Below are positions 11,891 through 64,000 of a stretch of DNA of 64,000 nucleotides, in pieces. Every line of letters starts with the position of its first letter. Position 1 is the stretch's first letter. The translations under genes were made by a program, and so were the position numbers. The stretch is taken from contig OZ218962.1 in the NCBI GenBank assembly GCA_965112735.1, positions 1-64,000 of the forward strand, given 5' to 3'. The notes beneath the pieces were generated by a model, which saw only the letters and a program-made list of their open reading frames with translations, did not search any database and was not told where the DNA came from. This DNA comes from Phaeosaccion multiseriatum. Lineage: Eukaryota; Protista; Ochrophyta, other classes.

Positions 11891-14800
11891 TCAAGCAAGG
11901 CAGGCTCTCCTTCTACCCTCCTGCTGCTCCCTGATCCCCTCGTCCGTTGCTAATTTTCTTACAAGTTTTTTCACCTGGCGAAACTCTCCTCGGGTGTCGG
12001 GGTTCTTGTCCCATAAAGTCTGAATGAGCGTGGCCCAGACCTCTGCGCACGACCCAGCGATGACCGGCCGGGATCCGAGATCCACTACTTTCCGAACTAT
12101 CATTTGGCTTCTTTCATTCTCCCATGGTCTTGCCCCGTCCTCGGCTCCGAAGAGCTCCCACAATACAATGCCGAAAGAGTACAAGTCGGCCTTTTCCATC
12201 TGTTGCAGGGTCCATTCTTGACTGGCGTCCTCTTCCAAAACCTCGGGGGCTGTCCAGGCTAGAGTGCTTCCCTGCGAATGATTATCAAGCAACAGGGGCG
12301 AAGCGAAAGGAAAATCAGACACAGGTTCAGACATTCTTCAGGGTCGAAAATAACGAAGCACACGACAAATTGGACTAGCTAGAATCAAAGCAAAAGACGA
12401 AGGGCCCGTTTGAAGTTACTTACCTGCACCTCCGTGTGCTCCTTGTGATAGACTGTAGATTGGGAAATGGTCTCCCTGGTATAGGACAGGCCAAAGTCGC
12501 ACAGCTTGGCCCGATAGTCCCCGGTAATGAGGATGTTCGCGCTTCTAAGGTCTCGATATGCCACGCCATGGTCGTACAGGTAGTGGGTCCCCGTGGCAAT
12601 GTCGTGAGCAATTGAGGCCCTCTTTGATGGAGGTTCCAGTTTTTTTCTGTCCTTGAGCGGAAGACCCAGTATGTCATAAAGGCTGCCCATCTCCACAAGC
12701 TCCTGCATTTTAAAGTTAAGAAAATGTGGTGGTAGTAGGCAGAAGAAATAAAAGCGACTCAGTTGCGCGTAATTTCTTGCCGTTGTGCCCCAGAATTACT
12801 GACAAGCCCGTACCTCGACGATTATGAGCCGCGACTTGCTCGCGCTGGCACCGTACACGTTGACGACCTGTTCGCATCGCGCCAGGCGCCGAAGGATGTA
12901 AAGCTCGGCGGCGAATTGCCGACACTTTGTAATCCTGTCCCGCTCGTCTACACCGTCGATCTTGATACACTTGGCCGCATACTCGCACCTGCCTTCGCCT
13001 TCTCCCCAAAAAACTCTGCAAACATCGGACTGTAAGCCTCGGCCGATAGGTTTTGTGTCCGGGAAGCTAGGAGAGAGGCAGAGGTGGGGTAGGTTAACAT
13101 TGGGTCCACGAAAACAAGAGGAACGAGGCAGGAGGAGGGAGGGGGCGTAAGGCAGGCACCATGACAACCCTAACCCTTCACTGACTCTTCTTCCGAGCAG
13201 GAAGTGTGTCCCGACCGACTCGTGGTCCTTACTTGAGGTCGTCGACATGGATCCTGAGAATTCTTAGCTCCTCTATAATGGCGTGACGAGAGGTGTCAGT
13301 TCCCCCTTTCTCTTTTTCCCCTTCGTCTTGACCACTTGCCCCGTTCATTATCATGGGCCTCCGCTGGGTGTCCCTCGCCTCGAGCTTAACAAAGTCATGC
13401 AGGAAGTCTTCCATGTTCGCGTCGTGGTTCTCCAACTTCTTGTTCATGATGAAGAACTCGATGCACACGTCCAGCTTACGGGATACCTCTGTAACTTCGG
13501 TCAAGGCCTCTGTATTCACCGCAAGATTCTCTGCATTCACCGCAAAATTTATTTTTGAGATGGCCAATTCAATGGTTCTGACGATCTCTTCGACGTTTTC
13601 CTTAAATTTCTTTGCCAGAAACATTTGCGTCAGGCGACCCTGGTATGAGTCATGGACGCATAATCGACGTGAGCGAGTGTATGAAATAGACACACAAATG
13701 GACGGAAGGGAATGGAGGATCGAAACGTGAGGTTAGTTACAGACAGCAAATTTCCATCCCAAACTTTCTCACAGCCACACGCACGCACCTGCTGGTAGTG
13801 CTTCTCGGATTCATCACGGAGGATGAGCAGCTGGTCGTGCACCGGTTCTAGCAGCGTAAAGTTCGCCGCAAGCGCCGTGGAATCGGGGTCACGCCTCTTC
13901 ATTTCCAGCAGCTGCTTGTGCAGTCCCTCCAAGACGGTCAAGAAGGCAGCTGTCAGCCTCGCCGTGTCCGCCTGCTCGCGGGCGCGATTGTTGCTCGAGA
14001 AGCTTTCGTACATGTCGTGCACCTCTCGACAGAGCACCACTGCGGCCCCAATCCAGGGAAGCTCCTCCACGACATTGGCCCCAACTGTGACTATAGACCG
14101 GCCCACCTCCCTGGTGGCCCCCCTCGCGCCCGTACTAGAGCTGGAACTCTCCTTCCTCGGTCCCAGAGACGTACTTTGCTCACTGTTCTTCTTTCGTCGG
14201 TACCAGCAGCAACACGCCAGGAGCACGAAAACAGCGAAGAGAGACGCAGGGATGCCCGCTGCGAGTCCCAGGGTTCTGCTCGTGTTCGATCCTCCTAAAA
14301 TCAAATCGGCAAAAACAAGCGGTAGGGGGTGGGAGAAAAGGGATTGGGTGTGACACAATGAGGGGTGGTCTGCACAAAAGCTGCTTGTTAACCTTGCTCA
14401 CCTGCTGCATCGGAACGAGGGGGAGTCAAGCTCGAAGAGAGGGCCACGCACTCCGACTCGCCGCGTAGCGCTGCGCTGGCCTTGGGCTCGCCTTGGACGG
14501 TTGCCGCAACGGTTGCCTCCTCCGCAACACACACGTCAAGAGCCTGGGTGAAGTCCTCCCCGGACAGCCGAGATGCCATTTCAACGTCTGGTGGTGACGA
14601 AGATGATGACGCGATGATATCCAGCGAGTAGTGAATCTCATAGAACGGGCCTGATGGTGTAATTCTCGTAGCAGACGAATTGGCCAAGCAGCATTCGACA
14701 ATCACCGCAGATGGGTCAACTCCAGCGACGACCTCTGACACTGCACATGGCAGAGCTGCTTGGTAAGCCTCCACCACCAGCTCCTCATCCGCATCCAAAA

Positions 14801-17131
14801 GCCTTCTCTCCGCATCCGCATTCAAGAGCCTTCTCTCCTCATCCGCAGTCAAGACCCCGAAGCTTCCTCCCAAAACATCGTCTGGTGCACCCAGCCACAA
14901 CAACAGTCACGGCGAGCGCATGCCCCGAACCAAGTATGTGGAAAAGCGACAAGCAAAGCGCACACACACACACATGTATATAAATATGGTGAAAGAAATG
15001 AAGACGAGAAAAGGGGGAGCATTCCCTCTTTTGGTGGAGCAGTTCTTGGCCGGGCTACAACAGCCGTCGAGCCGCTGCCTCAGCATGGAACAGACAGATG
15101 CGTCTCTGCAGCCAGATTCATCCAACACAAACTTCAGGGGAGAGATGACAAGTAAAAAGAGCCGCTATTTAGTCAGACGGACAACACAAGCCAGCGTCAT
15201 ACAGCCGGTACGCATCTGACCTGCTGCGATGGGAGCCGACGACGTGGAAGAATCAAGCGATGCTGGGGAGACAGTGGTTGGAAGAGGCGAGGGTGAGACA
15301 GTCTCCTGCGTCGGAGCGGGACTTGGCACTGGTGCTGCGGAAGTGGGTGGCGGTGTTGCTGGAGCAGGGGTCAGCTCGGGCGTGGGTGGTGTTGTTGGAG
15401 CAGAGGTCGGTTCGGTGGTGCGGGGGGGGGTCGGCTCGCGCGTGGCAGCGGGTGCTGTTGCCGGGGTTGCAGAGCGCATGATGAGGCGAGGCGAGAGCGG
15501 TGCCCAATGTTTCAAGGCGGATCGTGGGCGGTTGTGTACGTGGTCGGGAAAGGGTGAGCCATACGAGGGACTTTGCGAATCCCAACGAAGCCATGCAAGC
15601 CTGGAATGCCAAGCAACACCCTGATACTACAATCTTAATACTCTTGTTCCTTTGCTCGCACCAGCCACCCCATACTATTTGCTTCCTTGACCCTTGAGCA
15701 TACCTGAAGCTGCGGGGCACCCAATTGATGATGTAACTCCATCATCGACGGTGCTAGGGAGGGGTGAAGACATGCATACGTACATCACAGCATCATTGAA
15801 AATAAAGTTACCTGAGACGGTCACCTTAGGGACACAAGGAGCCACAGAGTGAGAGAGAGTGTAACAGCAGAGACAAAGCAAAGGTAGTGAGAGTCAAGAG
15901 GAGAGGACAACCTTCCTGACGCTCTCTCGCACCTCTCCTGTCCCTGTTGATTACGATCAACGCTGCACCTTCTCTGGGGTGCCTCCGCTCATCAAGAGAG
16001 CACACCAATCAGTCACCACACTTGATTCGCTGGGCCTTACCTCGCCAACGAATCTGATCGATGCACCATTCCCGGTGTTGTGAACCGCCGAGCCACCTCC
16101 TATAGCGATATTGCCTACGAACGAGCTTTCCGCCGTGAACGTGATGTCTCCTCCGTCATTGTGAAGCCCTCCTCCACTGCGATTAGCCTCATTGCCTTTG
16201 AAAGACGATTCCGCCATGAACGTAATGTCGCCTCCGCTGTTGTAAAGCCCTGCCCCTTGTAAGTCACTCCTGTTGTCTTCAAACACAGACACTTCCATGA
16301 ATATAATGATTCCTTCAGCCGCATTAGCGATGGCACCACCATTAGTAGGTGATCTTCCATTCGACCGAAACAAGGCATCTCCTTCAAAGGTGAGTGCTCC
16401 ACCATTATCTATCACCCCGTCTTCGTTGGCGACAGCTGAGGCAGTCAGGCCAGTGTGGAGGGATGAAGCAAGAAGCAGGCAGAGTGAAAGCAAAGGCAAA
16501 GCAACGGCGGGGGCCATGCAGACAGCAGATCCATGGTTAGCAGCTGTGTATAGTAGATTTCCTTCCCCCCTCCCTCTATGATCCTCTGCCTTGGCTTCCC
16601 TTGATCGCACACCACACCTTCGACGGTATTCATGAACGTGAGCGTTCCCAGGTTGAATATGACCCTCGCACCGACGTTGCCGAAAAAACTCGCGGCTCCT
16701 TCGAAGCTTACAGTGCCTGAGGTTATGTTCAAGACGTTCTCCTGCTGGTGGAGAGAGCGAACAAGAAGCAAGCGCACAAATCATGGTGGTGAGTGGCCTT
16801 GCACTTGGCTGGGTGGGCGGCTTTGTGACAGAGGGTCGGGTGGGGTCTACAAAATTTCCCACTGCTTTTCTCTCGCTCATTCGCTCTCTGTGCTTACCTC
16901 TTCATAGTTGGTGAAGGAGATAGGGAAGCCTGCATTGGCGAAGATGAGCTCCCCTCCAGTTACCGAGAAGGTAAGCCGCTGGATAAATACCGGCGCAGAA
17001 AGGGTGATCGTGATGCGCATGCCAGCCGAGACGAGCAGAGTTCCCACATCTTCATCGCATTTCAGGTCACGATCTAGAGTAAATGACGACACCTCCTTAG
17101 AGGGTGTGCAGCTGAGCGTCTCCTCCGCCAT
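11891..17131 (-). CDS. Multi-exon receptor-like kinase: Pmp/beta-helix-like ectodomain + Pro/Thr/Ser stalk + RRLL/SEA-like region + TM + MLKL-NTD-like helical bundle + TKL-group kinase
   Basis: Phase-compatible GT-AG exons ~17131-16898, 16741-16618, 16435-16041 (GGAI/FxxN repeats), 15825-15784, 15753-15704, ~15450-15221 (PT-rich), 14881-14402, 14294-13789 (TM 'LGLAAGIPASLFAVFVLLACCCWYRRKK'), 13639-13233, 13066-12814 (GRG, YAAK), 12702-12424 (YRDLRSANIL, DFG), 12271-11891 (WTAPE, DLYSFG). The start codon is uncertain because no clear signal peptide follows ATG 17131. Confidence 0.85.
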
Positions 17132-18066
17132 TCTGCCTCTCCTGACGCTACCCCTTTTGACAGGGAGGAGGCTAAAGAGAGGACAGTGTGGGGACTGAAA
17201 TTTAAGACGCCCCCCCCCAACTGGCTTTGATTCATTGTCATCAAGCTCCCCAGAGCCATAATAATAGAGACTAATGGAAGGGGGAAATGAAAAGAAGACT
17301 AAAAAAAAATCTGCCGCCGTCGGACCAAAAGACAAAGTTGGGGTTTCTGGGGACCCAATCAGTATAGTGTAACGGCCGGAAAACGGGCCAACGAGTGCTT
17401 GCTTAGCTTCTGCTTGGCTCTAGCTTGGCTTGTAGTCTAGCTGTCGGTAGTTTCGACACCTCTAGTGTCGAAATCAGGCGCCAGATGGCCCACCGGGGCC
17501 ACCGGCCACAGATGGGCCATTTCAACCCCGAAGAACAGAGTGTACAACCGCACCGGGCACACCAGAGACGCAGGGCACACTCATTCCTTCCATGGTGGGA
17601 CCATTTCAACCCCACCGGCCCAAGAAGGGGGGAGGAAGTAGAAGTACGAAGTATCACGAAATTCCCGGCAGCTCGTACTTGAGGGCTCTATTGCAGCAAA
17701 CCATTGTTAGCTACCAGTGAGGAACAGCACGTTTGGGGACCAATTGAGACCAATCGCTACCTACAGCTCGCCCAACACACAAAGTCCACATGGGTGCCCA
17801 CAGGAGTAAGCCCCAAGTTCGATGCGTGCGTGTCTCTATACAAGCCTGGGAAAAGTCCCGCCCCTCTACAGGCGCAGTTGGGGGCGTATGGGCCTCTCAC
17901 ATCGACATGTTTACGTAAGTGAGCCCTTTCCACCTCCACTCCGTCGCTTTACCAGTTGGTACTCCACTCCGTTGCCAGGGGTGGGACGGGAGAGGGCCAA
18001 GAAGCGACTGCCCATGTGTCTGACTGTCTCACTGCCTTACCAGTGCCGTGAGGTGCTGTGCAGTGC

Positions 18067-20109
18067 CTATTTGGTGGTGCGGTAGCCTGCCACCTGGTGC
18101 TGCTTAGTGGTGTTGTCCCTACTCGAGGGATCCACCTCCGGCGGCAGATCAATACCGTTCCTACGCAGGATGGGTAGCCCCGCCTTGACGCTGGCAAGCA
18201 GCCACTGCATCATGAGCACTCTCTTCTCCTGCAAAGGGAGGGTGCCGCGGGGGAGCCCGCCCTTCGCCTGCAGATACGCCAGCGTGATGCTGGTGGCCTG
18301 AGATGGCAGTGGATGGGGGGGGAGGGGGGGTGGCGCACAAGATGTTGAGGGCACTGGCTCCCCTTTGGAGCAACCATGTCTAGGGGAGAGCCTGTGTATA
18401 TCGGGCTACTCCTCACAGCCTCATACGTATAACCACCACCCTTCACGCCCCGAAGGGAGACGTGGGTACGGTGGAGAGGAAGCTCATCGCTCGAGTGTTG
18501 AAGTGGTATTGAAGTAGGCCGCGAAATCCTCCTAACTGGTGAGCGGCACTTCCTCTTCCCTCCCTAGCAGAGAGGCAGAGAGTGTGCTGTCTGGGTCCAC
18601 GTCGATATCGACACTTGTCCGGGGTTGAAATAGGGCCATGTCAGGTATTCGTGTCAGGACCCCCTTTCTGGAATGTCCTTTGGACTTCCACTTTTTCCTT
18701 TCTCTTTCAACAAGGTACCTTGCTCTACGAGCAGGCTACAAGATTATAATAACAGAGCCAGTGGAGTATTCTCTAAACCCGTAGAAGAGGTTGTGGGCAC
18801 AGCAAAAGAGGCAGAGAGGCAGAGAGGCAGAGAGGCAGAGAGGCAGAGAGGCAGAGAGGCAGAGAGGCAGAGAGGCGCGCCCCCATCGACCATCCACTGC
18901 CACCCCCTCGCCCCCCCCCTTCTCCCTCCTCCCTCTGCCACTCACTCACCACGCTCATGTTGAAGGACTCGGCCATGCCCACCATGGGCAGGTAGAAGGT
19001 ACCGTCCGCAAGCTCTCGCATCTCGTCCGAGATGCCCTCCTCCTCGTTGCCAATCACGAGTACTGTGGGCGGAGCGGACTCTGCCGACAGGTCCACGGCG
19101 TCGATGACTTGTGCCCCGGGCCGCACGTCGGAAGCCAGCACGCGGAAACCCTCGGCTTTGAGAGCCTTGACGGCCTCCGTAGAGGTGTCGTGCCCATGGA
19201 TGGAGAGCCATTTCTGATCGGGGGGGGACGTGCAGGTCGTGTGGGTCACTTTCACAAGCAAGAGCAGAGCAGAGCAGAGCAGAGCAGAGCAGAGCAGAGC
19301 AGAGCAGAGCAGCGGAGCCACGTGTACGTGTCAGTCCGTGTGCCGCACCTGACTCCCCATGGCCACAACCATGGTCTGCAGCTTGCCGCTCCGCTTGTAC
19401 TGCTCAGGGTCGGCGACGACGTGCACGTGCTGGATGCCGAAAGAGTCCAGTGTGCGCAAGCAGGCCCACACGTTGTTGGGGTTGGATGGGTTCTCGAACA
19501 TGAAGCGCTGGGGGGGGGGGGGGGAGGGGGGCACCGACAGGAGCGTGCGAGTGAGCGACGGCAGGGAAGGAGGGGGCTCAACTCCTCCTCTCCCTTCCCT
19601 CGTCAATGAGCCCCATCCTCATATCCCTCTCACGAGCTCTGCCTCACCGCGTGGTGCGTCCTGTTACCGAGCACGGTGGTGAGCCTGGCCAACCTCTCCT
19701 TGGAAACATGTCCGCTCAGCACCTCGATGGCCCTCTCCACCAGCTCCATTGTGCTCTCCGAGTGCGGCTCGCCCAACCTGCAGGGGGGCAGAGGGCAATG
19801 GCACCAGACAACAACAGATGAACGGGCAGTAAAGACTCTTCGAATGCACACGCTGCATACATGGATGGCCCTCTCCGGACCTCTTGCCTGCTCTGCTCCT
19901 TCGCTCCCCACTTGCTTACCATTTGTTCGTCATCACGGACCCCCCGGGGAGATTGTCCCCTTGCTTGTTGAGCAAGGCCACCTGCAAACCATATGGAGTG
20001 AGCGCCGCACCACACGGTCAATCCCAGAGCAGAAGGGAAAGCGTGAGCATGTGCATGAGTATGAGCAGCACGCGTACCATGGAACTACCTCTGCACTCTG
20101 CCCACTCTG

Positions 20110-47230: not shown

Positions 47231-49151
47231 TCAGCAGGATCTGTCCTCCGAGATGCCTGAGATGGCCTGGAAGGTGCTGCCGAGCCACGGCAGCAAAGGC
47301 GACGCGTTGGCCACCCGCTTGAGCTGCCGAGCCATGACGCGCGCCCACAGAGCCAGCAGCTCCGCCCCCATGTACAGCTTCCAAGCAGAGACGACCACCA
47401 ACACGCCAAGCAGCAGCTGCACGCACCGCAGCGCCGCCAGGGGCGCCGCCAGAGCTCCTTGAGACGCCCTCTTGTGTTCCGCGGTGTGCATGGAGCGCTT
47501 GTACCAGCCCACCATGTCCCTGGTCACGAGCTCCGGCGTCTGCCCGAGCACCTTGTTTCGGCCCTGCCTGCCAAGTGTCAGGCGGAAGGCGGGGTCGTCC
47601 CTCAGACGCTGCAGGGCGGTGACTGCCTGTCCGTCCGTCTCGAACAGCAGCCCGTCCTTCCCGTCGCTCACTGTGTCTGCGAAGCCCTGCGTGCGCGGCA
47701 CCACTGCGGGGATGCCGCTGGCGTGTGCCTCCAGCACAGTGTTGCCGAGCGTCTCGAAGTGCGAGCAGGACGCGTGCACGTCGGCAGAGGCGTAGAAGGC
47801 CGGCAGCTCATCATGGCCGAGGAAGCCCGGCACACAGTGCAGGCGGTTGGCCTCCCCGTGCTGCGCCGCGAGATGAGCCCCCATGGGCCCGTCCCCCACA
47901 ATGGCGAGGAAGCAGCCCTCCACCCTCCTGCACACGGCCACAAGCTTGTCCAGCCCCTTCTCGGGCCCAAGCCGCCCAACGAAGAGCACGAGCAGCGCGT
48001 CGGGGTGTCCGAAGGTGAGGCTCCTCCTCGTGTCCTCGCAGCGCCTCTCGGGGGTGAAGTTGTGCACCTGCACGCCCGTCTGGAGCACGAAGTCGCACGG
48101 GGCGCCTTGCTGCTTGAGCTTGGCAAGGAAGGAGCGGGAGGTGGTGGCCACTGAGTCCAGCCACTGCGCCTCCATCTTCTCCTTCAACATGGCCAGCCAG
48201 CACATCGCGTCGCACAGGGGCGTCTTGTTGACAGAGCGAAGGAGAACGGGTAAGTCTGTGTGGATGGAGCCCACGCAGGGGATGCGCAGCAGCTTGCACG
48301 CCAACCCGAAGGAGAGCGACAGCGCGTCCACCGTGACGTGCACAAGCTCGGGCCGCTCTCTCTTGAGCGCGCTCCATATGGTCCTCATGTTGCGCAGAGA
48401 GGGGGCCGCCACCTTCTTGGACGGGTACAGGGGGAGGAAGGCAGACTCCAGGTACACGTACTTGAAGCGCGGGGCGGGCGCGGTGGGAGCTGCGGTGGGG
48501 GGTCCTCTCCCTCCTCTCCCTCCTGCGCCTCGGGGGCTCCGACTGGGTGTGCTGGGTGGCGAGGGAAAGTACGCTGCTCCGCCTGCTGCTTTGAGAGGTG
48601 CTGCCGGCGCTGGACGGCCTTCTGAGTCGACTATGGAGATGGGCGATACGCACTGCACGCTGTCGCCAAGTCTGGTTGGAGGCTCTGGATGGGGCATACC
48701 CTTCTCGAGTTCGGGCTCCTTCTCCAGCGTGAAGACAACCACCTAGCAAGGAGAGACGGGGTCGGGGAACAGACAGAAAGAGGGGGAGAGGGGAGAAAGA
48801 AGGAGAGAGAGGAAGAGGGCGAGAGATGATAGAGAGGGGCGGACAGAGAAAAGAGAGGGTGGGGGGGGGGGGAGACAGAGAAAGAGAGAGAGGAAGGAAG
48901 AGGGGGAGAGAGGGAGAGAGAGAAAGTACCAGTGAGTGTGGCGCGCGGACCAACCATTTTTCGAACGCGTTTCCTTCCTCGCGAGATGCATCACCGGGGC
49001 AGGAAGTGAGGGCACACACCACGTGGAAGGGTTAGGGCTAGTTGCCTACCTCGTGTCCGGCGTTGTACAGCTCAAACAAGATATCGGTGAAGCGCCGACA
49101 CACGCCATCCACCTGCGGAGGGAGGCTGTGTGTGTACACCGCGATCTTCAT
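47231..49151 (-). CDS. GT4 glycosyltransferase, sulfoquinovosyltransferase SQD2 / MgtA-like
   Basis: Exon 1 (49151-49050) 'MKIAVYTHSLPPQVDGVCRRF..L...GHE'. Exon 2 has 'HTD', 'LFVGRLGPEKG', 'LAIVGDGP', 'ETLGNTVLEAHASG' (EX7E). Confidence 0.9.
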
Positions 49152-49575: not shown

Positions 49576-51894
49576 TCAGTCTGTGGCGCCGTACAAGGCA
49601 TTGATGGTACCGGAGCCGCCGCTCTCCGTCTCCCTCTCCCTCTCCCCCGCGAGGAGTCTGCCCTCCCCCTCCTGCCCACTGCCCGCCTCTCCCTCGGCGG
49701 CCACCCTCGGAGAGCTCTTCCCTTCGGCACTCAGTCTCTGACTCTGGCTCTGCCTCCTCCTCCGCCTCCGCCTTTCCCTCAGGCAGGAGCGCACCAAGGG
49801 CGGGACGTACACCACGAGCACCCACACCACGCCAGCGGCCACAGCGAGCAGCGCCGCCCCCAGTGCCCACCTCGACCACCACAATGCGTCCCTCCTCGCC
49901 CCCCCCTCCTCGCCCCCCAGCTGCAGGAAGCCACCCCTGCCGTGCCAGTCCCCGCCGCTGCACTCGCCTGTGCACGCGAAGCCGATGCGCAGGTTCTCCA
50001 CGTCGAACACGGAGTAGTAGGCCTGCAGGAACACGTCCCCGAGGATCCAGTAGCGGCCCCCGAAGGATGGCTGCAACTTGATGAGGCATTCCCCGAAGCG
50101 CGAGCAGACCACGTAGTCCTCCGCGCGGATGGGAAACACATTGTCCGGGTACACGCCGAACAGGAGAGAGGGGAAGGCGCTCTCGTCCACGCCGAAGCAG
50201 GAGGTGCCCCTGCAGTCCAGGCCCTGCGTGATGACCATGAGCACGTCGACAAACAGGTCCTCGGGGATGGCGATGCCACTCGTGCCTGTGTCCACGATGG
50301 CCACGCAGCTGTTGTCTTCACACGCCCTGGCGGAAACCTTCTGCGGCGCCCCGGAGGAGCTGGAGGAGGTCGTGGAGGACTGCCCAAGTGCAGGCACACA
50401 CACGTAAGCATTAGGTAAGTACTAGTTAAATACTTCGTAGTACTAAGGAGGGAGCTCGTCCATGCACCGACGACTAACCTGTGCGGAGTGCGAGAAGGAT
50501 ATGTCAATGGAGGTGATGGCCACGGTCCAGTAGCGCAGCTGTCCGAAGCTGTGCCTCACCAGGGGCGTGTATTGCCAGGACGCGTTGGGACTCACAAGGC
50601 CGAGGTCGTAGGCGCCGAAGGCCTGATGGGGAGGGGAGAGGAGGGAAGGGGTCGGAAAACCACAGATGAGGGGGTTGGACAGATGAGGGGGTTGGACAGA
50701 TGAGGGGGTTGGACAGATGAGGGGGTTGGACAGATGAGGGGGTTGGACAGGGCAAGACAGCCCAGGGCCTCTCCCTCCTCTCAGCTTGACGCCTTACAAT
50801 GTGGGACGGCTTGTCCTCGTCCAGCGGGTCATTGGATAAATACACGCTGAACAGGAAGGGCACGTCCGGGTAAGTGGCGTGCAGCAGCTCCAGCAGAGTC
50901 GGTGTCGTCACCATGCTCAGGCCTGGGGGGGGGGGGATATGTATGGGTTCCAGTTCCAGCAGCAGTTGGTGATACTTCAGTCTACTTTGTGTCACAGCAG
51001 AGAGAGAGCGCAGCAAGCCCCCCCCGGTCCCTCACCATAGCACTCACCAGAGAATCCCAGGCCCGCGATGCCGTCCATCATGAAGGAGCGTATCTGCTGG
51101 TCCTCGAACATGACCTCCCCGAAGCTCACCCCCTCAAGGGTCAGCCCCTCACCGAGCGTGCACTGGTCCCGCGCCGTGAAGCCCTGCACCAAGCCGCTGC
51201 CGTAGTCCACCTCGAACATGCGGCGCTGGCCGTCGCCCCCTAGCAACATCTCGTACGTGTCGCTGCGGGCGCTGTCGAAGGTGGCGTGGTTGCCGCAGGC
51301 AGTGCAGCCCTTGCCGGGGATCCACAAGTCGCTGCTGCCCGTGTCCAGCACCACGCTGAGCATCTGCGGCGGGGAGCCCACGCCCACGTCCCCCACGTAC
51401 TGGCTGTTATAGTAGTCGGCCAGCCGCACCTTGCCCAGCTCGCTGTCCCCCACGCGGGCCCCTTCCCCGACCCGGACGTCCTCCTCCGCCGGCTTCTGCC
51501 CCTCCTCCTCCTCCTCCTCCTCCTCCTCCTCCTGTTGCTGCTCCTGCCGCCGCTGCTGCTGCTCCCTATCCTTTTCCTGCCCTCCTTCCCACGTCAAAGG
51601 GTCCCCTGCACTGCCGCTCGCCGGATGCTGCAACCTCCTCCTCCTCCTCCCCCTCCGCACGCCCTGAGCCGTTACCTCCACGCCAGTCTCGTACCCTCGC
51701 TCAGGGCCATCACTCGCAACTACCTCAGGCGCTGAACCGGCCCGTACTCCTCTCTCTACGGTCCCTGCTCGCCGCTGGCGCCTCAGGGGGATGAACGCCC
51801 CCCCTCCCCCCGGCGTAGCGCTGCCTCCACAGTCACTGCTCGAGGCTGCCGTCTCCGCCGCTCCACCCCCCTCCTCCGCCACATGCCACCTCAT
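49576..51894 (-). CDS. Pepsin-family (A1) aspartic protease with C-terminal transmembrane helix
   Basis: Two catalytic motifs 'VVLDTGSSDLW' and 'AIVDTGTS', plus 'YGSG', 'DGIAGLGF', 'WILGDVFLQAYYSVFD'. TM 'WALGAALLAVAAGVVWVLVVYVP'. Start uncertain. Confidence 0.92.
50662..50749. repeat. Intronic 17-bp tandem repeat (ACAGATGAGGGGGTTGG) x5
   Basis: Direct observation. Confidence 0.95.
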
Positions 51895-59826: not shown

Positions 59827-62800
59827 TTACAGCCCTCCCAGCCCCGTAGCCCCCTCCCCCTTCTCCCGTTCCCTCTGCTGCCATCCCCCTTGCTCTCCGA
59901 TCCCGAGATATCTAGCCTCGATCTCCGCCAGCGTCCGTCCCTCCCCCCGGGAAAAGCACCCCCCTGGAAGTGTCTCCTCGCCCCCCCTGGGTCCCCTCCC
60001 CCCCAGGGGCGGGTCGTAAACGATGTTCGGCACCGCCATGCCTGAGCAGCGCAGGAGCACAGAGGCGTCGCTGCTCGACATGGACAGGCCCAGGACGGAG
60101 CCCCTCCCGTCTGCTGCCATCCCACTCTCTCCCCTCTTGTCATGAGGAGCAGTGCTCACCACCACATCCCCCCCGGGGTGCGAGTGTCCCCCCTCGGGTA
60201 GAGAGGGTACAGAGAGGCTCGGCACCTCCAGTTCAGGCCACTCCTCCTCCCCCTCCACCTCCTCCTCCCCCTCTTCCTCCTTTTGCCTCTCCTCCTCATC
60301 CTCCTTCTGTCTCTGCTCCACCTGCACCTGCTCCTCGCTCTCCTCCTCCTCCTCCTCCTCCTCCTCCTCCTCCTCCTCCTCCTCCTCCTCCTCCTCCTCC
60401 TCCTCCTCCTCCTCCTCCTCCTCCTCCTCCTCTTTCTCCACCACCTCACTCTCCTCATCCTTCTCCCCCTCCTCCTCCTCTTTCTCCACCACCTCACTCT
60501 CCTCATCCTTCTCCCCCTCCCCCTCCTCCTCCTCCTCCTCCTCCTCCTCCTCCTCCTCCTCCTCCTCCTCCTCCTCCTCCTCCTCCTCCTCCTCCTCCTC
60601 CTCCTCCTGTTCTTGTCCCCGAGCATCCCGTGGCACGTCTTGCTGTCTCCCCTCTTGGTCCTGACACCTCGCACCGCCCTCTTGCTCCTCCCGCCCCTCT
60701 CGCCGGTCAGATGTGTCCGACTGCTCTTGTCCTCGCCCCTGCCGTGTGCGCAGCTCCCCCGCTGCCGCTGCGTCCTCCTCTTCTCCCTTTCCGGAGAAGC
60801 CGCTCGAACGGGCGTCCTCCCTCCCCCCTTCCCGCTGCCCCACGGAGTCAGGCTCCCTCCTTCTCCTCCTCCGGCAGGCCCATGAGCATGCTTGTGCCTG
60901 CTCCATCGCTTCCTCACTGCCTAACCCTAACCCGTGCCCCCTGCTGCCCGCCGCCGCTCTCCCCCCCCTCTGCCCATATGCTTGCTGCCGCCCACTGCCC
61001 CCTTGCCCCTGCCCATGTGCCTGCTGCTGTATCACCAACTGCTGCTGCTGCATGACAACGGCATGCAGAGCCTGTACTTGGCGCTGCAGAGCAACAATCT
61101 GCCTCTGCTGCTGGAGTAGCACGGCGCTCACTGCGGGGTCCAGACCAGAGACACGTGAGGTGCCATCATCATCCGACGTGTCCAAGGCTGTAGCGCCCCC
61201 CCCCCCTCCTCCTCCTCCTCCTCCTCCTCCTCCTCCTCTGCTACTCGCACACCCCCTGCGAGGCGTTGTCCGTCAGCGCAAGTGCGGGAAGTGCGACAAG
61301 TCGGGGCAGTCGGAGTCTCTGCATCATCATGCTTTTGCTGCCCAACAGCCTGCGGAAGGGCCGCAGGTTGGTGGTATGTGGCCTTCGAGTCGTCGCCAGC
61401 TGAGCCCTTGAAGAGAGAGCGACGCTCCTGTTGTCCCTCCCCCCTCCTCGTGTCGCCCCTTCCTGACACAAAGTGCGACGCCCTCCGCCGTGCCCCCTCG
61501 GGTTGGCGGCGCCCGTCGGGTTGGCCGTCTCCGGAGCCGCCCCCTCGGGTTTTCTTGGCCGCTGCGAGGAAGGAGGAAGTGAAGTGCGGATTCGTGGCGG
61601 GGCGGAAACACCCCAACACGGCCACCCCCCCGGGGCCCTCTGGTGTTGCCGACAAGTCGACGTCGGTGAGGAAGTCGAACTGGGAGAAGCTCAGGCGCAT
61701 GGGAGAAGCCTCCTCGCCCGCCTCGCCTCCCTCGCCCCCCTCGCCACCTGCTCCTCCTCCTACTACTACTACTACTCTTCCTCCTCCTCCTCCTCCTCCT
61801 CCTCCTCTTCTTCCTCCTCCTCCTCCTCTTCCTCCTCCTCCTCCTCCTCCTCCTCCTCTTCTTCTTCCTCCTCCTCCTCCTCTTCCTCCTCCTCCTCCTC
61901 CTCCTCCTCCTCCTCCTCCTCGACTCGGAGACCCTGCTGCCCCCCCCTTCCCGTCCTCTCTGCAGCGCACGTGGTGGAACACCACTCCGCTGCCGCCATT
62001 TGGGATGAGGGCGAGCAGGAGCGTCCAGGGGGCGGGGCTCGCGTGCGTGCGTGCGTGGCTCCCTTCGCCCCCCGGGGCAGCTTGGTCGAGGAGGTAGGCC
62101 ATGAGCCCTGCCCACACCTTGGGGTGCCGTACGTCCTCCACGCCGCTCAGCCACACTCCCACCAGGGGCACCTGCACGCACAGAGGATCCTGAGGGGGGG
62201 GAGATGGCAGTGGAAGAGTGCGATCAGGTGGGTGAGGGTGCGGGATTCCCTCCTCCACCTCCATGGGTGCCATCCGGTGCCATCCCGTAGGCGGGAGCTT
62301 AGCCTCACACTGCCACTCACACTGCCACTCACGCACTCACTCACTCACTCACTCACGCACTCACTCACTCACTCACGCACTCACTCACTCACTCACTCAC
62401 TCACTCACTCACTCACTCACTCACTCACTCACTCACTCAGTCAGTCAGTCAGTCAGTCAGTCAGTCAGTCACTCAGTCAGTCACTCACTCACTCACCGAC
62501 TCTTCCAGGAGCACCGCCCGCCTCGCCTCGTTGAGCGTGAGCACGCCGCTCGACATGGGCACGATGGGCGCGATGGACCCGTGCCCTCTCTGCCCTCTCT
62601 GCAGCTGCAAAAGGGTCTCTGCGAGGGGCGTGTGGAGCAGCGGCAGGGGCATGATGGGCGTCACCTCCAGACACACGTTGGGAAGCACCGCCTCGGCTCG
62701 GAAGCGCATGGACGTGAAGCCTGGCACCTCTGACACCTCGCACGACAACCGCAGGGGCAGCATCCGACACTCCGCCGCGTCGCCCGAGGAGCCACAGCTA

Positions 62801-64000
62801 GAGCCATAGCAGTTGGTCGTACGGCCGTGTACGAAGCTGGTCATGAAGCTTCCGTACTCCTCCTCGGACACGCGCAGGGCCGCCAGAGAGGACAGTCCCT
62901 CTCTCTCTCGCTCTTTCTCCCTCACAGGAGGTGTCCCGCCCTCCCCCCTCGGGGCAGCGCCGCCGCTCACGCCCATGACCTGCGCCGCAAGGAGGGAATG
63001 CCGCGCCTGCCCCTGACCTAAGCAAGTTCCCTGCCCCATGAGCCGCTCCGCAGCGCCGCCCGCCGCGCCCCAACACGCTACACGCGAAGTCGCCACCTCC
63101 ACCTCGGACAAGGACGAGGGGCCCGTGTCAGGGGCAGTTTCAGTGCCAGCTTCGAATACAAGCGTGTAGGCCGCCTTGCTGCGGATGGCCGCCATGCGCG
63201 GATCGTTCTCCAGACCATTCTGCAGACCGTTCTCTGCGCCCCCCCGGGCCAAGTCGCTGGTCCGGACCAGCCTCCCCGCGAGGGCCCCTGCCACTGCGTA
63301 GCGGCGCTCGTCCTCCCCACTCTTGCGTAAGGCCCCGAGCTTGTCGGAGAGGACCCGGGCCATTTGCCGTGCAGTGGCCAGGGGGAGCAACACGGCGGGG
63401 AGCACGCTCGAGGGCTGCAGACAGAGGGTGGGGCCTCTCCCCGAGGGGGTGCTGTCCCACAGAGAGAGAGTGCTGCTAGGGAAGCGGATGGAGCCGAAGT
63501 ACACGTCATTCGCATTCGCCGCCGCACAGGCTGGCGAGGCCGCCGGCCCCAGGGAGGGGGAGGGGGAGGGCCTGTCATACAGCAGGGGGAAGAGCAACAC
63601 ACTTTGAGCAACAGCTCCTACCAGCAGGGTAGCAAGGGTACAAAAGACGGCAAAGGGAAGCAGATAATGGGGTAAAGGGTAGCTGACACGGCCTCCCCCC
63701 TGAGGAGGCACCCCACTCCCATCTCCCGGGCTCACCGCTGGTAAGAAGCGGCGCCTCCCCCCCAGCCACCCCTTCCCGCCTGCGCCTCCTTGTCCCCCAT
63801 GGCAGCTCTCACGGCCCTGGCAGCCTGGAGGCCGAGCAAGATGCTGCCGCCCCTGCTTGGGCCTGCGCGGCCACATTGCCTGCTACTGCTGCTGCTACTG
63901 CTGCTGCTGCTACGGGGGGCGCCCTTCTCGGGAGCGGGAGAGCCTCCGTAGGGAGAGCCTCCGTAGGGAACGGTGAAGGGGGGGGCGGCAGAGTGCTCAC
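59827..64000 (-). CDS. STIL: STIL/Ana2/SAS-5-like centriole assembly protein, 5'-partial
   Basis: STIL_N-like 'FPSSTLSLWDSTPSG' and 'GVLTLNEARRAVLLEES|DPLCVQVPLVGVWLSGVEDVRHPKVWA'. Coiled coil 'LLQQQRQIVALQRQVQAL'. STAN-like 'VPNIVY...EIEARYL'. The window ends on a GTGAG donor, so the gene probably continues beyond it. Confidence 0.8.
62325..62496. repeat. (ACTC)n/(AGTC)n microsatellite starting at a STIL intron donor
   Basis: Direct observation. Confidence 0.9.

Follow-up and report, generated by a model that had tools for sequence, protein, structure and literature searches.

Pmp-type repeats form adhesin beta-helices in Chlamydia, and the chlamydial Pmps belong to the autotransporters and carry a beta-barrel at the C-terminus. 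RPW8 and CC-R of plants are helical domains related to MLKL/HeLo, and in RPW8 an N-terminal membrane anchor adjoins the helical domain. MLKL_NTD-kinase proteins combine a bundle of four helices with a helical brace and a kinase (PMC7705454; PMC10951266). The MLKL/HeLo fold has been described so far at the N-terminus of soluble proteins; in the MLKL family the bundle sits at the free N-terminus of such a protein (PMC7705454; PMC10951266), and MLKL uses clustered positive residues to engage lipids (PMC7705454).

The gene described here lies on the minus strand, from 17131 to 11891, of a 64-kb window (the whole stretch of DNA that was analyzed). An 11-exon GT-AG model, whose exon joins were predicted from splice borders and intron phase alone, gives a single open frame of 1138 aa. 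From the N-terminus, the predicted protein consists of an ectodomain of Pmp repeats, a stalk rich in Pro and Thr, an orphan domain close to the membrane, a TM helix followed by RRKK, a helical module, and a TKL kinase. On balance, we lean toward the view that this is a lineage-specific type I receptor-like kinase in which the helical module regulates or dimerizes the kinase. A sequence-only reading of the same DNA had proposed that a sensor, a membrane anchor, an executioner-like bundle, and a kinase are fused in one chain. The Pmp-repeat ectodomain, stalk, TM helix, helices, and TKL kinase do fall in one predicted frame, but the executioner-like bundle found no support in the searches, made with pieces of it, that are described below.

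The position of the receptor gene is subtelomeric. The window opens with a telomere repeat array, (CCCTAA)n, at 1-6949 (~1158 copies; Tandem Repeats Finder, period 6, 100% matches; GC 0.50, GC skew -1.0), followed by an (AGG)n microsatellite at 6951-10484 (~1178 copies; Tandem Repeats Finder, period 3, 98% matches). A retroelement integrase fragment on the plus strand (10734-11405; Pfam Integrase_H2C2, E 3.7e-15) separates the repeat arrays from the receptor gene, and this ORF had no further Pfam match at E <= 0.1. Because of this fragment, the receptor gene, which had been called the telomere-most gene, is the cellular gene closest to the telomere, although it is not the closest coding remnant. 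No paralogues of it were found within the 64-kb window.

The ectodomain contains Pmp-type repeats and a mucin-like stalk. The repeat core, with GGxI and FxxN turns, is encoded by exon 3 (16041-16435; this and all other exon coordinates are on the minus strand). The GGA(I/L/V) and FxxN turns were recognized by the Pfam model Chlam_PMP (PF02415) in three stretches, with an E value of 1e-6 and a score of 28.8 bits against a gathering cutoff of 20.6. Exon 4 (15704-15824), which has GT-AG borders, an open frame, and a fitting phase, adds the final repeat turn and a Cys-containing segment. Exon 5 (15221-15454) encodes the Pro/Thr/Ser/Ala-rich stalk, in which P, T, S, and A make up 79% of 82 residues; its acceptor, 15456-15455, is the sole AG acceptor within its open stretch. 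Exon 6 (14402-14881) encodes a 159-aa extracellular membrane-proximal domain and opens with a 27-nt tandem repeat (14781-14854). This domain had no Pfam match and no homologue at E <= 0.01 in a protein database search. There are five N-glycosylation sequons N-terminal to the TM helix, and none of the receptor-gene pieces scanned matched a Pfam autotransporter domain. The proposal of a Pmp-like ectodomain on a mucin-like stalk is supported by a Chlam_PMP score above the gathering cutoff and by the composition of the stalk.

The N-terminus of the receptor may differ from that proposed earlier. In the sequence-only reading the protein starts at ATG 17131, in exon 1 (16898-17131; 78 codons of beta-helix-like repeat character), and continues into exon 2 (16618-16744; 42 repeat-like codons). 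Judged by a hydropathy heuristic alone, a signal peptide is absent from the N-terminus at ATG 17131, and no comparable hydrophobic start was found upstream of it on the minus strand, to 18.8 kb. The sole signal-peptide-like start was ATG 16517, inside intron 2 of that model (16436-16517, minus strand), which had the top hydrophobic-start score (2.67) of all minus-strand ATGs in 15.9-18.8 kb. ATG 16517 is in frame with exon 3, and 16041-16517 translates without a stop on the minus strand. We propose that a start at ATG 16517 with a signal peptide would make the repeats extracellular. Exons 1 and 2 had no Pfam match; their local alignment score against the exon 3-4 repeat region (residues 121-295) was 51, compared to 30.7 +/- 5.0 (maximum 50) for shuffled sequences. 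They appear weakly similar to the exon 3-4 repeats and look like coding repeat turns. A start at ATG 16517 would exclude these repeat-like exons from the protein, and this counts against the explanation that we favor.

A single TM helix is linked to a long cytosolic helical module. In a hydropathy scan (19-residue window) of the 1138-aa model, residues 539-562 stood out as strongly hydrophobic (mean KD 2.36), with RRKK after them, and no second segment had comparable hydropathy. One TM helix with a basic cytosolic flank is what is expected of a type I receptor kinase. Exon 7 (exon A, 13789-14294) has a canonical AG acceptor at 14294 and GT donor at 13789 and encodes the TM helix, a CCC-W-Y-RRKK stop-transfer sequence, a Ser-rich linker of ~45-50 aa, and helices 1-3. 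Translation of 13789-14292 reads through the TM segment and the linker into ELPWIG and on to EKHYQQ, and translation of 13235-13639 in exon 8 (exon B, 13233-13639) begins GRLTQMFLAKKFKEN; both peptides quoted earlier are therefore present. As had been claimed, the TM helix and the first helices share one exon, so their linkage is independent of any splicing model. The connection from these helices onward to the kinase runs through introns 7 and 8, which are predicted from their GT-AG borders and phase.

The module has ~seven predicted helices and no detectable relatives. AlphaFold gave three helices (12-33, 37-67, and 72-100; pLDDT 71.6) forming a compact unit for the 101 cytosolic residues of exon A, and four (2-36, 39-70, 76-91, and 114-134; pLDDT 58) for exon B. 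Exon B supplies predicted helices 4-7; the last of these leads straight into the kinase N-lobe and is preceded by a disordered acidic/Gly loop. The module is 227 aa long, and the segment from membrane to kinase is ~280 residues, mostly helical and unusually long. Inside the helical region, exon B carries an in-frame 21-nt (7-codon) tandem duplication (13508-13549); it corresponds to one heptad and would keep the helical register. No homologue was found for exon A among 1.84 billion proteins, or for exon B in a protein database search. Pfam-A (2025 copy, E <= 10, with HMMER filters that drop most matches above E ~0.1) gave no credible family for any of four pieces: the 168 aa of exon A, the 101 cytosolic residues among them, the 135 aa of exon B, and 65 aa spanning the junction of the two exons.

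The kinase is probably catalytically active, because all of the catalytic motifs are present. Exon 9 (12814-13066) encodes the N-lobe with the Gly loop (GRGLQSDV), beta-3 Lys, and alpha-C Glu; exon 10 (12424-12702) encodes the catalytic loop, YRDLRSAN, with its Asp and Asn, and DFG; and exon 11 (11891-12271) encodes the APE motif, the C-lobe, a short tail, and the stop codon. The three consecutive exons matched Pfam kinase families: Pkinase for exon 9 (E 3.2e-5), Pkinase (1.3e-13) and PK_Tyr_Ser-Thr (1e-12) for exon 10, and PK_Tyr_Ser-Thr (2.5e-13) for exon 11. The best PDB matches were CTR1, EGFR, CERK1, PLK4, and IRAK4 for exon 10, with RIPK2 lower down, and MAP3K12, ZAK/MLT, RIPK1, and CTR1 for exon 11; plant MLKL (6ka4) was a weaker match to the C-lobe (E 6.5e-7). 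The matches to CTR1, MAP3K12, ZAK, RIPK1/2, IRAK4, and CERK1 support assignment to the TKL group, in agreement with the proposal that the helices lead into a TKL kinase.

It is unlikely that the module is an MLKL-type death effector. In that explanation, helices 1-4 would be a highly diverged MLKL_NTD/HeLo bundle and helices 5-7 a brace, and clustering or kinase activity would free the membrane-tethered bundle to permeabilize the plasma membrane, so that one chain would be both sensor and executioner. The order of helices, brace-like helices, and TKL kinase does resemble that of MLKL_NTD-kinase proteins (PMC7705454; PMC10951266): helix 4 is separated from the kinase by three more predicted helices and a loop, modeled at pLDDT 58 and without homology. 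The predicted lengths of helices 1-4 (22, 31, 29, and 35), with short loops, suit an up-down bundle, and the start of helix 1 is fairly hydrophobic (mean KD 1.43 around residue 601). The EKHYQQ/GRLTQMFLAKKFKEN segment presumably resembles the helix 3-4 region of the MLKL family, a likeness that we take as a lead and not a test. The match to an MLKL pattern in the sequence-only reading is likewise an interpretation and not an observation.

The searches and the properties of the module argue against this explanation. No MLKL_NTD, HeLo, or DUF1221 signature from Pfam was found on any of the four pieces, including the junction piece that holds the FL.A...K motif. PDB sequence searches with the pieces gave chance matches only and none to an MLKL, HeLo, or CC protein; the best match of the motif was an unrelated ADP-dependent glucokinase. 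Foldseek searches of the PDB with the two AlphaFold models, which were helical, gave nothing at E <= 0.001, and the 50 matches listed were to generic (three-)helix bundles, with no MLKL among them. There was no cluster of positive residues of the kind used to bind acidic lipids: helices 1-4 have 16 K+R and 18 D+E (net charge -2), and the whole module is acidic (-12). The module is not at a free N-terminus, since helix 1 is ~50 residues past the TM helix and more than 600 residues from the start of the model. The C-terminal domain of animal MLKL is a pseudokinase, whereas the kinase here keeps all of the catalytic motifs. On these pieces, neither HMM nor structural similarity to MLKL_NTD/HeLo was found, an outcome that the sequence-only reading had itself named as refuting it, and on this scope the claim of a death-effector bundle is unsupported. 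A full-domain score of marginal size would escape searches made with pieces, and a bundle of MLKL, HeLo, or CC-R type that lies beyond profile detection, tethered under the membrane and permeabilizing it upon clustering with the TKL kinase as a switch, seems to us rather improbable. Because none of the evidence gathered favors MLKL/HeLo identity, the label 'MLKL-like receptor' is not warranted as things stand.

Slightly more doubtful still is the possibility that the single long protein is not real. There might instead be two products, one with the ectodomain, TM helix, and helices ending at an in-frame TAA (13231-13229) and the other a kinase whose start is ATG 13248. Alternatively, this subtelomeric gene might be in decay and not be expressed in the form modeled. 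The frame of exon B does meet the TAA exactly at the proposed donor, and the ORF from ATG 13248 (12796-13248) crosses intron 8 into the kinase N-lobe with no stops. The 5' end is ambiguous, with repeat-like exons 1 and 2 and no signal peptide, and a retroelement fragment adjoins the gene. Both GC and GC3 of the receptor gene are below those of neighboring genes, GC3 well below, which could reflect low expression, recent arrival, or decay. Against this, each of the ten introns is bordered by GT and AG, their phases are compatible, the joined frame is free of stops over 1138 codons, and there are no frameshifts or internal stops in any exon of the model. Intron 8 has a strong donor (GTAAGG) and a strong, pyrimidine-rich acceptor, and if two genes overlapped by ~20 nt on the same strand, the second would lack space for a promoter.

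We think it quite improbable that the protein serves mainly in adhesion or in recognition between cells (for mating, self/non-self recognition, or substrate attachment), with the chief function lying in the Pmp beta-helix on its stalk and the kinase only reporting contact: the Pmp-type repeats, the P/T/S/A-rich stalk, the five sequons ahead of the TM helix, and the subtelomeric location of the gene would all fit, but this role is compatible with the explanation that we favor and not exclusive of it, and with no paralogues in the window and no homologues of exons A, B, and 6, diversifying selection or family expansion is not demonstrable.

If the protein is a lineage-specific type I receptor-like kinase, translation would begin at ATG 16517, and the signal peptide would direct the repeats to the outside of the cell. 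Contact with a ligand or a surface would cluster the receptor, the helical module would hold or position the kinase, acting in dimerization and autoinhibition, and clustering would lead to trans-phosphorylation of the activation loop and downstream signaling. The helices would regulate and would have no role in killing. Because the module has no detectable relatives, this putative regulatory role rests on its position and on analogy with juxtamembrane helices and the 'brace' of kinase fusions, and not on homology.

The receptor kinase is of unusual build, with its Pmp-repeat ectodomain and a cytosolic module of ~seven predicted helices without detectable relatives. It adds to the evidence that protists build receptor kinases from parts of their own, and the helical module is a concrete orphan domain for folding and testing. 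If the module were an MLKL/HeLo bundle, sensing and execution of cell death would be joined in one chain and the importance would be far greater.

Comparison with known systems brings out what is shared and what is not. With the chlamydial polymorphic membrane proteins, the receptor shares GGxI and FxxN turns that score above the Pfam gathering cutoff; in contrast to them, its gene is eukaryotic and contains introns, and the product is TM-anchored and fused to a kinase. With MLKL and the MLKL_NTD-kinase proteins (animal MLKL; plant AtMLKLs and Pm13), it shares amphipathic helices, more helices, and a TKL-related kinase in one chain. However, its helices follow a TM anchor, are acidic and not basic, and had no HMM, sequence, or fold match for the pieces searched, and its kinase is apparently competent. 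RPW8 and CC-R are the nearest precedent for a membrane-tethered bundle, but RPW8 has neither an ectodomain nor a kinase, and no sequence or fold similarity to RPW8 or CC-R was found with the module pieces. With the TKL receptor-like kinases (plant RLK/Pelle-IRAK, such as CERK1 and SOBIR1), whose soluble cousins are animal IRAK and RIPK, it shares extracellular repeats, a single TM helix, and a cytosolic kinase, and among solved structures its kinase is closest to CTR1, MAP3K12, ZAK, RIPK1/2, IRAK4, CERK1, and SOBIR1. Unlike these kinases, it has an ectodomain of Pmp-type repeats and an orphan domain and not LRR, LysM, or lectin domains, a mostly helical segment of ~280 residues in place of a short juxtamembrane linker, and a catalytic loop that reads YRDLRSAN.

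The gene at 17131-11891 (minus strand) would encode a receptor-like kinase with a 227-aa helical module between the membrane and the kinase. Exon 3 (16435-16041) matches the Pfam family Chlam_PMP in three stretches, with a score of 28.8 bits (E 1e-6) that passes the gathering cutoff. In exon 5, 79% of the encoded residues are Pro, Thr, Ser or Ala, and a hydropathy scan of the model found one strong transmembrane (TM) segment, at residues 539-562. Exon 6 (14881-14402, 159 aa), which is extracellular in the model, matched no Pfam family and had no homologue in a word-indexed homology search. It begins with 2.7 copies of a 27-nt tandem repeat (14781-14854, minus strand), whose translation contains an acidic ...ADEERRLLN... 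motif. The last three exons match Pkinase and PK_Tyr_Ser-Thr in Pfam. The order of parts proposed in the sequence-only reading (repeat ectodomain, stalk, TM helix, helices and kinase) is supported, but its start codon probably needs moving and its MLKL identity is unsupported. A bacterial-type Pmp autotransporter is ruled out by the introns and by the presence of a C-terminal TM helix and kinase, not a beta-barrel.

The kinase is probably active, because all of the catalytic motifs are present in its predicted sequence (Gly loop, beta-3 Lys, alpha-C Glu, YRD, Asn, DFG and APE). The best solved relatives of the kinase exons were CTR1, MAP3K12, ZAK, RIPK1/2, IRAK4, CERK1 and SOBIR1, which we assigned to the TKL group. 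In the word-indexed homology search, the C-lobe had only two relatives, both metagenome fragments (36-45% identity); the called genes on the contig of the first match only kinase, and the second is on a 1.8-kb contig with no informative neighbours. We lean toward reading the gene as that of a type I receptor-like TKL kinase specific to this lineage. In this reading, a mucin-like stalk would carry a glycosylated Pmp-type beta-helix facing outward, and the long helical module would be a dimerisation and autoinhibition unit ahead of an active kinase. No report of such an architecture came up in literature searches (titles and abstracts of the papers listed).

The module is predicted to be helical, as had been claimed, but its proposed kinship with MLKL, HeLo or DUF1221 domains found no support. 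AlphaFold, run without an alignment, modelled the cytosolic part of exon 7 (14294-13789) as three helices (12-33, 37-67 and 72-100; mean pLDDT 71.6) and exon 8 (13639-13233) as four (2-36, 39-70, 76-91 and 114-134; pLDDT 58). Pfam searches at E <= 10 with exon 7, its cytosolic 101 aa, exon 8, and a 65-aa piece that spans the junction of the two exons and includes the motif taken as MLKL-like, found neither MLKL, HeLo or DUF1221 nor any other credible family. The helical pieces had chance matches only in a phmmer search of PDB sequences (PcrA, TamI and ADP-dependent glucokinase), and the glucokinase matched the FL..KF.E..EEI.R.IELAI stretch itself, indicating that such a helical pattern arises easily. 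Foldseek searches of the PDB with the exon 7 and exon 8 models gave nothing at E <= 0.001. Generic bundles of three helices (Not5, mite allergens, SNARE Habc domains and designed bundles) made up most of the best 50 matches of the exon 7 model, MLKL was absent from those 50, and the exon 8 model had low-probability helical matches only, with no MLKL among the matches listed. Two matches of the exon 8 model to plant NLR resistosomes (prob 0.41 and 0.15) had E > 1 and are not evidence. A search of 1.84e9 representative proteins with exon 7 (phmmer) returned 0 matches at E <= 0.001, self-match included, and this library appears not to contain the proteins of this organism. Exon 8 had no relatives in the word-indexed homology search, and tblastn found no paralogues of the model within the window. 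The module also contains a 21-nt tandem duplication (13508-13549, minus strand, two copies, 90% match) which, at exactly seven codons, would preserve helix or coiled-coil register.

A death-effector bundle of the MLKL/HeLo type tethered to the membrane, as first proposed, is an unlikely reading of these helices: none of the Pfam, PDB sequence and Foldseek searches with the pieces gave an MLKL match among the matches listed. We regard it as unsupported rather than disproved, because the searches were run piecewise (exon 7, exon 8 and the junction piece of the spliced domain) and HMMER filters drop matches weaker than E ~0.1, so that two sub-threshold pieces could sum to a marginal full-domain score. 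Among the papers listed in literature searches, no title or abstract described a TM- or receptor-linked MLKL/HeLo domain or a Pmp-repeat receptor kinase in algae.

That a single exon encodes both the TM helix and the first helices can be read directly from the sequence, because the exon edges and the translation match those that had been claimed. Exon 7 has an AG acceptor and a GT donor at exactly the proposed edges, and its translation runs from a hydrophobic segment ending CCC-W-Y-RRKK through a Ser-rich linker to ELPWIG...EKHYQQ; exon 8 opens with the quoted GRLTQMFLAKKFKEN. Linkage of the helices to the kinase in one chain would depend on the predicted introns 7 and 8, both of which have good splice signals. 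Two products instead of one chain, including a kinase-only product from an ATG at 13248 (minus strand), are formally possible, because the donor of intron 8 coincides exactly with a TAA that ends the exon 8 frame (13229-13248 region, minus strand) and an ORF from that ATG, in another frame than exon 8, reads through intron 8 into the N-lobe of the kinase. Retention of intron 8 would yield a receptor without a kinase. The model as a whole was rebuilt by hand from the minus-strand sequence and then checked by script: its 11 exons have GT-AG at all borders and compatible phases, giving a single open frame of 1138 codons. We consider it quite improbable that the model is an artefact or that the gene is decaying.

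The true 5' end of the gene probably differs from the start initially placed at 17131, which gives an N-terminus without a hydrophobic signal. An N-terminal part of about 530 residues cannot plausibly cross a membrane without a signal peptide, and the reading as a receptor therefore favors a start at ATG 16517. By hydropathy, this was by far the best signal-peptide-like start (mean KD 2.67 over 10 residues) and the sole start of this kind among all minus-strand ATGs between 15.9 and 18.8 kb. The candidate signal peptide ends in an Ala-x-Ala-type site, and the start region (16436-16517, minus strand), which shares its frame with exon 3, lies within the originally proposed intron 2. We sought an upstream signal-peptide exon in 17132-18700 and found none, and nothing upstream of 17131 was comparable to ATG 16517. 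Exons 1 and 2 nevertheless resemble repeat turns: aligned locally with the repeat region of exons 3 and 4 (residues 121-295), they scored 51, versus 30.7 +/- 5.0 for shuffles. An alternative 5' end or what is left of a partial duplication may account for these two exons.

The receptor gene is, as had been stated, the telomere-most cellular gene, and beyond it are repeats and a retroelement fragment. The window starts with a 6.9-kb (CCCTAA)n telomere array, adjoined by a near-perfect 3.5-kb (AGG)n microsatellite (6951-10484), a subtelomeric trinucleotide tract of unusual length and purity. Just past this tract lies an ORF with an Integrase_H2C2 match (10734-11405, plus strand, E 3.7e-15), a stranded retroelement fragment that about 0.5 kb separates from the receptor gene's 3' end. 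The next gene inward includes an ORF matching SpoU methylase (18773-19321), and other ORFs match a GT4 glycosyltransferase (47234-48742), a eukaryotic aspartyl protease (50995-51894) and, weakly, STIL_N (62488-63876), all on the minus strand; these are ordinary eukaryotic genes, with nothing diagnostic of an alga among them. Exons of the receptor gene have GC 0.48-0.67 and GC3 0.45-0.74, compared to GC 0.63-0.68 and GC3 0.73-0.83 for neighbouring coding ORFs, and 12-18 kb is the lowest-GC stretch of the window outside repeats. Many short microsatellites (CA/TG runs and TACA-type repeats) lie at 19.9-23.6 kb, with others at 18807-18876 (AGAGGCAG, 8.8 copies) and 19261-19312 (AGAGC, 10 copies); these microsatellites give rise to ORFs that are long but spurious, being made up of His/Thr, Cys/Val or Tyr/Ile repeats. 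Rfam and tRNA scans over the whole window gave no matches.

A mainly adhesive or recognition role, which is compatible with the reading as a receptor kinase, has little probability in our estimate. As an orphan part of a receptor kinase, the helical module merits proper folding, and on current evidence the gene should not go forward as an "MLKL-like receptor". The features of the MLKL family point the same way. In that family, the bundle is at a free N-terminus (PMC7705454; PMC10951266) and has a cluster of basic residues (PMC7705454). In contrast, the bundle here is not at a free N-terminus, its helices 1-4 contain 16 Lys and Arg versus 18 Asp and Glu, with a net charge of -12 for the module, and the kinase that follows it is not a pseudokinase.
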